Assembly: GCF_016432865.1 (NCBI RefSeq)
Contig: NC_067401.1
Span: 11,160,196 to 11,224,000 of the forward strand
Origin: Antechinus flavipes
Taxonomy: Eukaryota
Direction: 5' to 3'
Length of the DNA stretch: 63,805 nt
Position 1 is the stretch's first letter. The number at the start of each line of letters is the position of its first letter. Below the pieces are notes generated by a model. It did not search any database. It was given only the letters and a program-made list of their open reading frames with translations, and had not been told where the DNA came from. This document shows, piece after piece, positions 40,401-42,484 of the stretch. A program made the translations under genes and the position numbers.

Positions 40401-42484
40401 CGGCACCTAGTAGGTGCTTACCAAATGTTTCTGGACTTAAAATTTGATTCATCTCCAGGAGCAGAGACCGAATGCCTTGTTTGAAAACCCTTCATCTCCC
40501 AGCCTTTCTCACACTCTATGGGACGACCTCAACAAGTCGGTGACAAGGGCCTCCCGGCAGTTCTAGCTCCCGGCTGTCCCCCGTGCCATTATCTTGGTCT
40601 CCCGGCTTCATTGACCCAATTTCGGCCTTCTCCAGAGACCTCTCTTGGTCTTTCCCCCTGCCAGTGCCTTCCTTCTGAGGTTCCCTGTCTCGTATTGTCC
40701 GAACACAGTCATTTACTCTTTTTCCCCATTAGAATGTCAGTACCTTGAGGGGAAGGACTGTTTTTTCCTTTTGTATCACAGAGCATAGTAAGAACTTAGT
40801 TGACTGACTGACTGATGTCTGTCTGTGGCCCGGAAAGAGCCTCCCTGATCTTGACCCTGGACCTTATTTTCTCTCCACAGGCTGCTACTTTGACGGTGAC
40901 CGGAGCTGGCGGGCGGCGGGTACCCGATGGCATCCCGTGGTGCCCCCCTTTGGTCTCATTAAGTGTGCCGTGTGTACTTGTAAGGTACGGGCAGCTTCCC
41001 AAACCGGCCTCCCGTCCCCTCCTCAGCACAAGTCGGTAGCAAGCCACAGCTACCAGAGGAGCTGATTTGATCTTGGGCTTCATCAAGGGAGGGCTGGCCT
41101 CCAAGAACAAGGGGTGACAGTCCCGCCGGGCTCTGCGCGGCTCCAGCCACATCTGGACCATTGTGTTCAGTTCTCTGTGGCGCAATTTAAGGGCTTGACA
41201 AGCCGGAGTGTTGAGAAGGGCGGCCTGTGGGGAAGAGCCTGCGTCTGTGTCGTATGAAAATTGGTGGAAGGAGCAGAAGTTTGGATGGGGGAGAGAGCGT
41301 GGGGACCCAGGTGGATCGGGGGTGGGGAGGATGGGAACAGTTTGTGTCTCTATCCTCCGTATCCGGCGCCGTTCCTGACACACAGTAGGCACTTAATGAA
41401 AGTTTGCTGCTTTGTATTAAGGGTTTGGGTCAGATAGGGCAGGTGGGCTAGCTCACCCCTCCCGAGCTCCTGGTCCCTTCCAATCCTGCTGATTCCCCCG
41501 TAGGGAGCCACAGGGGAGGTGCACTGCGAGAAGGTGCAGTGTCCCCGACTGACCTGCGCCCAGCCGATCCGGGCCAACCCCACCGACTGCTGCAAACAGT
41601 GCCCAGGTGAGCAGGTCTGGCCCAGGTGAGCGGGTCCGGCCCAGGTGAGCGGGTCCGGCCCAGGTGAGCGGGTCCGGCCCAGGTGAGTGGGTCCGGCCCA
41701 GGTGAGCGGGTCCGGCCCAGGTGAATGGGTCTGGCCCAGCTGGCATTGCGCCTGGAGTTCCCTGGCCAGGGTGGGAGGAGGGGATCTGTCCCCATCTCTG
41801 AATCTTTCTCCTCTGAATTCCATCTCTGATTCTCCTCCTTCCCGTCTCCCTTCCTCCCTTCACGCAGCGGGCTCTGGAGCGCGGGCCTGGCTGGGGGATC
41901 CCATGCAGGCGGACGGGCCGAGAGGCTGTCGCTTTGGGGGTCAGTGGTTCCCTGAGAGTCAGCGGTGGCATCCGTCGGTGCCCCCCTTTGGGGAGATGAC
42001 CTGCATTACGTGCAGGTGTGGGGTGAGTGCTCTATTTGGGCCGGGGAGTGATAGTGGGAGGGACCCACAGGGAGGGCTGCCATGCGGGAAGACCCAGATG
42101 AGCAGGAAAGGTATCAGCAGAAGCAGGAGCCCGGGATCCGGAGACACCGGGAGCCCCGGTGCTGGAAGGCGCCCAACACCTGCCGGGAGGCCCACCGGCT
42201 TCTTCTCTGTCCTAGGCCGGGGTTCCTCACTGTGAGAGGGACAACTGCCCCCCCGCCTTGGCCTGTGGCTCCGGGAAGGAAAATCGCTGCTGTTCTCACT
42301 GCTCATCCCGATGTAAGTGTGGAATCCATGGCGGGCTTCCCGCTGAGGTGGGGCCCCGGGAAGGGGAGACAAGGGTGGGAGCAGCCGCGGACCGGCTCCT
42401 CTGCCCGACACCTTTCCACGTGTCTCTGCAGCCTCTGAGACCAGGCTGGAGCCAGAGCTGGAGAAAGAAGCTACGGACTCTTAG
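31326..42484 (+). CDS. CHRD: Chordin, 974 aa, 23 coding exons
   Basis: join 31326-31473, 31691-31794, 32209-32338, 32611-32739, 32976-33075, 33253-33340, 33743-33884, 34303-34443, 34590-34672, 34771-34918, 35050-35156, 35291-35410, 35864-36020, 36170-36390, 36928-37041, 37321-37650, 37756-37849, 37961-38017, 40881-40984, 41504-41606, 41868-42022, 42216-42312, 42432-42484 = 2925 nt, frame continuous; four vWC/CR domains plus the CHRD-domain region. Confidence 0.98.
31691..31794 (+). CDS. CHRD: CHRD exon 2 (CR1)
   Basis: [34 protein letters not shown]. Confidence 0.97.
32209..32338 (+). CDS. CHRD: CHRD exon 3 (CR1)
   Basis: [43 protein letters not shown]. Confidence 0.96.
32611..32739 (+). 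CDS. CHRD: CHRD exon 4
   Basis: [42 protein letters not shown]. Confidence 0.95.
32976..33075 (+). CDS. CHRD: CHRD exon 5
   Basis: [32 protein letters not shown]. Confidence 0.95.
33253..33340 (+). CDS. CHRD: CHRD exon 6
   Basis: [29 protein letters not shown]. Confidence 0.95.
33743..33884 (+). CDS. CHRD: CHRD exon 7
   Basis: [47 protein letters not shown]. Confidence 0.96.
34303..34443 (+). CDS. CHRD: CHRD exon 8
   Basis: [46 protein letters not shown]. Confidence 0.96.
34590..34672 (+). CDS. CHRD: CHRD exon 9
   Basis: [27 protein letters not shown]. Confidence 0.93.
34771..34918 (+). CDS. CHRD: CHRD exon 10
   Basis: [49 protein letters not shown]. Confidence 0.96.
35050..35156 (+). 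CDS. CHRD: CHRD exon 11
   Basis: [35 protein letters not shown] (AAG acceptor). Confidence 0.94.
35291..35410 (+). CDS. CHRD: CHRD exon 12
   Basis: [40 protein letters not shown]. Confidence 0.95.
35744..35775. repeat. (GT)16 microsatellite in CHRD intron 12
   Basis: Direct reading. Confidence 0.9.
35864..36020 (+). CDS. CHRD: CHRD exon 13
   Basis: [52 protein letters not shown]. Confidence 0.96.
36170..36390 (+). CDS. CHRD: CHRD exon 14
   Basis: [40 protein letters not shown]...[11 protein letters not shown]. Confidence 0.96.
36770..36900 (+). mobile_element. MIR3-like SINE in CHRD intron 14
   Basis: gggcaaatcgctttctctgtgcctcagtttctttatttgtaaaat...gggtccttccagctct. Confidence 0.6.
36928..37041 (+). 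CDS. CHRD: CHRD exon 15
   Basis: [38 protein letters not shown]. Confidence 0.96.
37045..37270. repeat. Degenerate G-rich repeat (ctcagggaragg(g)atggg) in CHRD intron 15
   Basis: Four related blocks at about 37056, 37158, 37197, 37247. Confidence 0.6.
37321..37650 (+). CDS. CHRD: CHRD exon 16 (linker plus start of CR2)
   Basis: [14 protein letters not shown]...[31 protein letters not shown]. Confidence 0.96.
37756..37849 (+). CDS. CHRD: CHRD exon 17 (CR2)
   Basis: [31 protein letters not shown]. Confidence 0.97.
37961..38017 (+). CDS. CHRD: CHRD exon 18
   Basis: [18 protein letters not shown]. Confidence 0.92.
39436..39856 (-). mobile_element. 5'-truncated young LINE-1 (3' end) in CHRD intron 18, antisense
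   Basis: Poly-T end; 14-bp TSD tggatctacttctt (39422-39435 and 39857-39870); TT|AAGAA endonuclease-type target; closely similar to copies at 47084 and 51760. Confidence 0.85.
40240..40440 (+). mobile_element. LINE-2 3' end relic
   Basis: taagctccttgagaccac...cagtacccggcacctagtaggtgctt. Confidence 0.5.
40881..40984 (+). CDS. CHRD: CHRD exon 19 (CR3)
   Basis: [34 protein letters not shown]. Confidence 0.97.
41504..41606 (+). CDS. CHRD: CHRD exon 20 (CR3)
   Basis: [34 protein letters not shown]. Confidence 0.96.
41602..41739 (+). repeat. 7 x 19-bp tandem repeat containing the CHRD exon-20 splice donor
   Basis: Unit CCCAGGTGAGCGGGTCCGG starting at 41602, 41621, 41640, 41659, 41678, 41697, 41716. 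Confidence 0.97.
41868..42022 (+). CDS. CHRD: CHRD exon 21 (second Tolloid site, CR4)
   Basis: [51 protein letters not shown]. Confidence 0.97.
42216..42312 (+). CDS. CHRD: CHRD exon 22 (CR4)
   Basis: [32 protein letters not shown]. Confidence 0.95.
42432..42484 (+). CDS. CHRD: CHRD exon 23 (last coding)
   Basis: [20 protein letters not shown]. Confidence 0.93.

Follow-up and report, generated by a model that had tools for sequence, protein, structure and literature searches.

How is a pre-mRNA spliced when its 5' splice site has been copied several times over within one short intron? The question is raised by a 63,805-nucleotide stretch of the Antechinus flavipes genome (NCBI RefSeq assembly GCF_016432865.1, contig NC_067401.1, positions 11,160,196 to 11,224,000 of the forward strand; hereafter the window, with all positions counted from its first letter), in which the border between exon 20 and intron 20 of the chordin gene (CHRD) lies inside a 19-bp minisatellite that offers seven donors to a single acceptor. 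An initial annotation of this DNA, made from the letters alone, had proposed that the repeated donors might form a repeat-tuned switch to a chordin lacking its last cysteine-rich domain, CR4. Most likely the array arose through repeat instability in a GC-rich gene and has been tolerated as a by-product, without being a device, and the reading preferred here, which we regard as probable while keeping several others in view, is that of a minisatellite born by slippage, tolerated since, and spliced mainly at the first donor.

The repeated donor at the exon 20/intron 20 border

Positions 41601-41739 are reported by Tandem Repeats Finder as a tandem array with a period of 19, 7.3 copies, 94% matches, no indels and a score of 236, the consensus of the unit being GCCCAGGTGAGCGGGTCCG (features are on the forward (+) strand unless stated otherwise). 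The array starts at 41601 and exon 20 ends at 41606, so that the first unit contains the exon-intron border, being made up of the last 6 nt of exon 20 and the first 13 nt of intron 20, and because this unit includes the junction, a strong 5' splice site is repeated along the array. When read unit by unit, units 2, 3, 4 and 6 are identical to one another, unit 1 reads GCAGGTCTG, unit 5 reads GTGGG and unit 7 reads AATGGGTCTG; the differences among units are CpG transitions, except for one G>A in unit 7. The window contains 10 occurrences of the motif CAGGTGAG, where 3.06 would be expected; as many as 10 were seen in none of 100 shuffles, and six of the ten occurrences fall within the array. Intron 20 (41607-41867) is 261 nt long, of which 133 nt are taken up by the array, and its sole acceptor (cacgcAG|CG, 41866-41867), immediately before exon 21, serves all seven donors. 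An E-box, CAGGTG, is found in every intact unit and CAGCTG in the last partial unit, making 8 E-boxes at 19-bp spacing in 41604-41739; this is automatic with any copied CAG|GTG donor, and functional evidence for the E-boxes of this array was not found.

All seven donors have the form CAG|GTGA(G/A)(C/T) and are identical or nearly identical to the authentic one. Donor strength was expressed as the energy of the duplex formed with the 5' end of U1 (RNAduplex). Donor 1 (CAG|GTGAGC, 41604-41612, GT at 41607), the authentic donor annotated in the RefSeq model, gives -11.1 kcal/mol, and the same value is obtained for the four decoys with the same nine letters, namely donor 2 (41623-41631, GT at 41626), donor 3 (41642-41650, GT at 41645), donor 4 (41661-41669, GT at 41664) and donor 6 (41699-41707, GT at 41702). 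The best U1 match in the array belongs to donor 5 (CAG|GTGAGT, 41680-41688, GT at 41683; -13.3 kcal/mol), whose 9-mer is counted as a perfect site in PMC1557585, and the weakest to donor 7 (CAG|GTGAAT, 41718-41726, GT at 41721; -8.4 kcal/mol).

The consequences of decoy use were followed by translation. Donor 2 would add 19 nt and shift the frame, leading to a TGA in the +1 frame at 41953-41955. Donors 3-7, like read-through of the junction, would meet an in-frame TGA at 41627-41629, which exists because the unit length of 19 is 1 modulo 3, so that AGGTGA of the second unit is read as AGG TGA; with donor 4, for example, 57 nt would be added in frame with this TGA included. In all six decoy products the reading frame ends after CR3 and before the PMQA|DG codons, and the stops all lie upstream of three exon junctions, and therefore, by the general rule, nonsense-mediated decay (NMD) is likelier than a secreted CR4-less protein, the decoy-spliced products being expected to serve as NMD substrates. 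The outcome differs from that of the human IFI6 minisatellite, whose 12-nt unit keeps the frame and yields protein isoforms, whereas the 19-nt unit of chordin always leads to a stop.

The gene is the chordin (CHRD) orthologue. The window equals the corresponding A. flavipes locus of GCA_016432865.2 (L001) at 13171 of 13327 positions, the remaining 156 being N in the window, and the RefSeq chordin XP_051855946.1 (P0278) maps exactly to the window in 23 exons, the 20th of them ending inside the array; in this model 41606 is spliced to 41868, which is the use of donor 1. Exon 20 (41504-41606, 103 nt) encodes the C-terminal half of the VWC domain CR3, ends with CCKQCP plus G (P0278 residues 896-929), and matches positions 27-57 of the Pfam VWC profile (E=8.5e-05). 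Exon 21 (41868-42022) encodes the linker with the second Tolloid site followed by the N-terminal half of CR4, matches positions 1-24 of the same profile, and its protein is 100% identical to that of the Tasmanian devil over 52 residues. The codons for PMQADG are at 41900-41917 and, by homology, specify a putative second BMP1/Tolloid site; we take PMQA|DG to be this site, in keeping with what is established for chordin. A search of protein representatives with exon 21 led to full-length proteins carrying PF07452 (CHRD) and PF00093 (VWC), with near relatives named chordin in many mammals.

The marsupial chordin cluster comprised koala, Tasmanian devil, Antechinus, Dromiciops, bilby, tammar, possum, wombat and sugar glider, and all of its chordin models read CCKQCP(A)GSG, which corresponds to donor 1; a decoy-using isoform was found in none of the annotated marsupial models. 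When the last 135 residues of the Antechinus protein served as query against the protein collection, only eutherian-like fragments of at most 79% identity were returned, and no dasyurid fragments, and a minus-strand open reading frame across the array (41456-41971), searched for in other individuals and species, gave no match. The descriptive part of the initial annotation is sound throughout. Its seven 19-bp units, seven GT donors and 261-nt intron half filled by the array agree in every coordinate with direct reading and Tandem Repeats Finder; its assignment to chordin and to exon 20/intron 20 agrees with the Pfam VWC matches and the 23-exon map; its statement that copy 5 pairs better with U1 than the authentic donor is borne out by RNAduplex (-13.3 versus -11.1 kcal/mol); and the TGA positions that it gave for donor 2 and for donors 3-7 are those obtained by translation, the protein ending after CR3 near PMQA-DG, as it had claimed, with all six alternative donors.

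Masking of the decoys by RNA structure was considered and rejected. The predicted fold of 41590-41760 is no more stable than those of shuffled sequences (z = -1.03), the unpaired probabilities are uniformly low, and donor 1 is not favoured. No Rfam match was found in 40500-43000 at E <= 1.

Origin of the array and constraint on the exons downstream

The origin of the array was bracketed by koala and Dromiciops on one side and by two dasyurids, Antechinus and the Tasmanian devil, on the other. A homologous array is present at the same junction in the devil (assemblies L002 and L003), with 13.3 units, 81% matches and, at a higher order, a period of 57 bp; its sequence and copy number are the same in these two independent assemblies. 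The devil array is longer and more diverged than the array of 7.3 units in Antechinus. Donor 1 of the devil is CAG|GTGAGT, and six of its decoys are weakened to CGG|GT or TGG|GT. In koala (L004) and Dromiciops (L005), whose introns measure about 150 and about 130 nt, there is only one donor and no array; the array therefore arose on the line to the dasyurids; the comparison places its birth after the split from the koala and Dromiciops lines and before the divergence of Antechinus and devil. In the alignment Dromiciops has GTCCAGGTGAGGAGCTCTCT and then GCCCCAAGG, similar motifs about 20 nt apart at the places where the dasyurid array begins and ends. This pair looks like a proto-repeat, which may have been the seed for the slippage that gave the 19-bp unit.

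Exons 21-23 differ between Antechinus and devil at 8 of 297 coding nucleotides (2.7%), compared with 7-11% in the flanking introns, and all ten cysteines of CR4 are kept. This pattern indicates that the CR4-encoding part, which any decoy would cut off, has been under purifying selection since the array arose. From this constraint it follows that full-length chordin is still made and selected, and that donor 1 is used at a useful rate. Conserved regulated unproductive splicing, in which the alternative site is used and is conserved across a wide clade, is not the pattern seen here, the array being found in the two dasyurids examined and not in koala or Dromiciops.

Two further observations concern the same part of the gene. 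At the exon 21 acceptor (window 41862-41870; about 11709-11718 in L002) devil and koala have a tandem CAGCAG, and annotated isoform pairs one alanine apart (CPAGSG versus CPGSG) exist in devil, koala and bilby; Antechinus has CAGCGG at this place, and the second acceptor has therefore been lost. In isoform X1 of wombat chordin (P0279, 1054 amino acids) the sequence continues across the exon 21 donor (CITCRLGCLTVRGMTV); this model probably reflects retention of the intron or an alternative donor at exon 21.

Known junction-spanning minisatellites and the choice among donors

Minisatellites that repeat a donor, with the first unit across the exon-intron border, have been described in human F7, IFI6 (6-16), CBS, LMNB2 and PDGFA (PMC1557585), and the chordin array belongs to this type, having the border in its first unit, near-identical donors and a shared acceptor. 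The initial annotation knew of no description of such an arrangement, a view that these cases contradict. Moreover, the title of a CBS study cited in PMC1557585 links the CBS variable number tandem repeat (VNTR) to reduced enzyme activity, and given this association of copy number with activity the idea of a dosage 'rheostat' is also not new. What is new at chordin is the array of the devil, the single donor of koala and Dromiciops, the conservation of CR4 downstream, and a second array at exon 4. A search of the literature on chordin splicing in marsupials found nothing relevant.

The closest experimental precedent is the 37-bp VNTR of F7 intron 7 (Borensztajn et al. 2006, PMC1557585), the first unit of which spans the border. 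There the most upstream donor alone is used and 8-12 repeats leave the choice unchanged, the identical pseudo-sites are silent, mutation of the G triplets of the unit is without effect, and pseudo-sites raised to a consensus value of 91 (Shapiro-Senapathy) are still unused; in minigenes the only pseudo-sites to compete were CAG/gtgagt, used at 70-90% when the upstream site was weak (consensus value 74). The two arrays are alike in the border-spanning first unit, in an authentic donor followed by identical pseudo-donors (4-8 in F7), in the single acceptor and in the correct splicing of an essential gene. They differ in unit length (37 bp in F7 and 19 bp in chordin) and in donor strength, the F7 donor being weak (TGG/gtgggt, consensus value 74), whereas those of chordin lie close to the consensus, and one of the decoys surpasses the authentic donor. 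In F7 the array is polymorphic among humans and its splicing is known from experiment, whereas the chordin array is common to two marsupial genera and is known from sequence and gene models.

The other human cases are divided. According to PMC1557585, the authentic site and the two nearest pseudo-sites are used in IFI6 and CBS, and the authentic donor only in LMNB2 and PDGFA. The IFI6 intron 2 minisatellite (Turri et al. 1995, cited in the same paper) resembles that of chordin in its short period, its position across the junction and its many donors, and has 25 pseudo-sites, of which the two nearest the authentic site are used constitutively. The 31-bp VNTR at the exon 13/intron 13 border of CBS (Yang 2000 and Lievers 2001, as cited there) likewise repeats its donor; it has 15-20 units and is a polymorphism within a species with phenotype data, its copy number being associated with reduced enzyme activity, whereas the chordin array is known from its sequence. 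The paper also records copied exon/intron junctions in LMNB2 (100-bp unit) and PDGFA (81-bp unit), as in chordin, but these units are much longer and the decoys far apart, whereas the decoys of chordin are spaced at 19 nt.

In the reading preferred here, two GCCCAG-like motifs lying close together at the exon 20/intron 20 border would have given rise to the minisatellite on the dasyurid line, through replication slippage or unequal exchange between them, and units would have been gained and lost since, leaving 7 in Antechinus and 13 in the devil. As in human F7 intron 7, splicing would take place chiefly at the first of the donors; the decoys would see little or no use, and whatever they did produce would carry an early stop and fall to NMD. 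In this account we infer that the array began by slippage, that donor 1 dominates in vivo and that decoy products decay. By analogy with the human cases, low-level unproductive splicing at the decoys is possible.

Several points weigh against this reading. Dominance of donor 1 is most likely, but it is drawn from gene models and from analogy, and the analogies do not all point the same way. The one pseudo-site sequence that competed in F7 minigenes, CAG/gtgagt, is that of chordin donor 5, and the two nearest pseudo-sites of IFI6 and CBS are in use. Hodson et al. (PMC3413131) found that when two strong 5' sites are at least 45 nt apart the intron-proximal (downstream) one is used almost exclusively, a rule that would favour donors 4-7; it conflicts with the F7 rule, and the outcome in vivo at the chordin array is therefore not deducible from the two. 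Finally, none of the 20 units in Antechinus and devil has lost GGTGA, the chance of which is 0.01-0.09 when 6-11 non-CpG changes are placed randomly; this invariance, noticed post hoc, is a weak hint of constraint on the decoys.

The main rival, on which these points bear most directly, is an unproductive-splicing leak, in which a real fraction of transcripts would use the decoys (2 and 3, or 5) and NMD would lower chordin, possibly in proportion to copy number. Such a leak is doubtful, though far from implausible. The decoys equal or exceed donor 1 in U1 pairing, every decoy product stops upstream of three exon junctions, and the use of two pseudo-sites in IFI6 and CBS, the tie between the CBS VNTR and reduced enzyme activity (both from PMC1557585), the competing CAG/gtgagt sites of the F7 minigenes (PMC1557585) and the intron-proximal rule for strong sites (PMC3413131) all agree with it. 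On the other hand, F7 pseudo-sites with consensus values up to 91 stayed unused and F7 copy number was without effect (PMC1557585), and the upstream donor of chordin is itself strong, unlike the outcompeted F7 site with its value of 74. Decoy use appears in no annotated isoform, and chordin is essential and conserved, its downstream exons having been retained in the devil while the array nearly doubled. That the decoys have been kept since before the Antechinus-devil split as a copy-number-dependent NMD limiter on the dosage of this BMP antagonist, set differently in the two animals (7 versus 13), is improbable. The opposite role, in which the array helps splicing as an intronic enhancer, with repeated U1 sites and a G triplet per unit, for the donor of a small exon, or acts at the DNA level as a cluster of E-boxes, is given a similarly low likelihood. 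Six GGG runs stand at 19-nt intervals immediately 3' of donor 1, an advantage for upstream 5' sites has been reported from G triplets and from intronic U1 binding (McCullough and Berget 1997, 2000, as cited in PMC1557585), and the invariance of GGTGA in 20 of 20 units would fit an enhancer; but the F7 repeat behaved no differently when its G triplets were mutated (PMC1557585), and the same exon is spliced without any array in koala and Dromiciops. For the E-boxes, the presence of CAGGTG in each intact unit and CAGCTG in the last partial one is offset by their automatic origin from CAG|GTG copying and by the loss of the motif in half of the devil units (CGGGTG).

The switch proposed in the initial annotation would require decoy-spliced mRNA to escape decay and to yield a secreted CR4-less chordin that ends just after CR3 and mimics the Tolloid-cleaved form. 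The truncation would fall 12 residues before the PMQA|DG site, and the BMP-inhibiting activity of chordin is retained or gained after C-terminal cleavage (PMC5080453); the background on which the proposal drew, that the cleaved form is active and that human splice variants exist, is confirmed in PMC5080453 (citing Millet 2001). A regulated switch is nevertheless very unlikely, since the stop in exon 20 of 23 has three junctions downstream and decay is expected by the general rule, koala and Dromiciops lack the array, which is thus not part of a conserved marsupial programme, no such form was found among the gene models or the protein-collection fragments searched, and CR4 is still under constraint. 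Tuning by repeat number finds no support either in F7, where upstream-only use is unaffected by 8-12 repeats, or in the marsupial models, which all use donor 1. An origin of the array or of its copy number in misassembly, a possibility that the initial annotation had itself raised, is not borne out. The Antechinus array, and with it the exact copy number, comes from a single assembly; but two independent devil assemblies give the same sequence for the homologous array, and the Antechinus array, of 139 bp, shows its unit variants in a fixed order between flanks that are unique and clean, so that an artefact is hardly credible.

For the biology of chordin the slippage-born, tolerated array is probably of little importance, the full-length protein being still encoded, annotated and conserved. 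Its value is that of a natural test case for the choice of a 5' splice site among several strong candidates, in an essential gene where 7 to 13 donors close to consensus, spaced 19 nt apart and including a decoy that outdoes the authentic site, have been present since before two genera split. Junction use in Antechinus and devil would discriminate in vivo between a rule in which the upstream site wins (F7, oriented scanning; PMC1557585) and the intron-proximal rule (PMC3413131). If the decoys were found to be used, the array would illustrate cleanly how a repeat can set gene dosage via unproductive splicing.

A second junction-spanning minisatellite and other repeats

The exon 20 array is not the only one of its kind in the gene. 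At exon 4/intron 4 of Antechinus a minisatellite of 37 bp x 2.5 units occupies window positions 32724-32817, and exon 4 ends at 32739, inside the repeat. The corresponding devil array differs in copy number between assemblies (8.5 units at 2557-2872 of L002 and 5.5 units at 2557-2761 of L003) and has a GG|GTACGG donor in every unit, and Dromiciops has 32 bp x 2.3 units (L005 1933-2007). The gene models use the first donor. The two arrays occur in the same gene and the same animals, both span the junction, and the first donor is annotated in both, the copy number at exon 4 being 2.5, 5.5 or 8.5; that of exon 4 differs in its G-rich 37-bp unit, in its GTACGG donor, in its presence in Dromiciops also, and in that some of its decoys keep the frame. 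Since junction-spanning arrays have recurred and been tolerated in GC-rich chordin, a mutational by-product fits better than a purpose-built switch.

One decoy of the Antechinus exon 4 array, CGG|GTAAAG at 32815, would extend the exon by 75 nt, in frame and free of stops, giving a 25-residue insert just after the first Tolloid-site region. This region (exon 4, 32673-32702) reads SYS-N-RGD in Antechinus, devil, koala, tammar, wombat and Dromiciops, SYS-S-RGD in possum and sugar glider, SYS-A-RGD in platypus, and SYS-D-RGE in the eutherians checked. In these sequences the change at the exon 4 Tolloid site is common to all marsupials examined and not specific to Antechinus.

Other repeats were also noted. 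Intron 12 of koala chordin contains a 49-bp x 9.0 array with 99% identity (L004 5133-5575), which starts about 27 nt after exon 12 and has a donor-like GG|GTGAGG site in each unit; the junction is not spanned. Large G-rich minisatellites with nested periods of 17/50/117/150 bp and 31/71/143 bp are present at 3184-3668 and 4035-4335 of the window, respectively, in the upstream region that the initial annotation had assigned to CLCN2.

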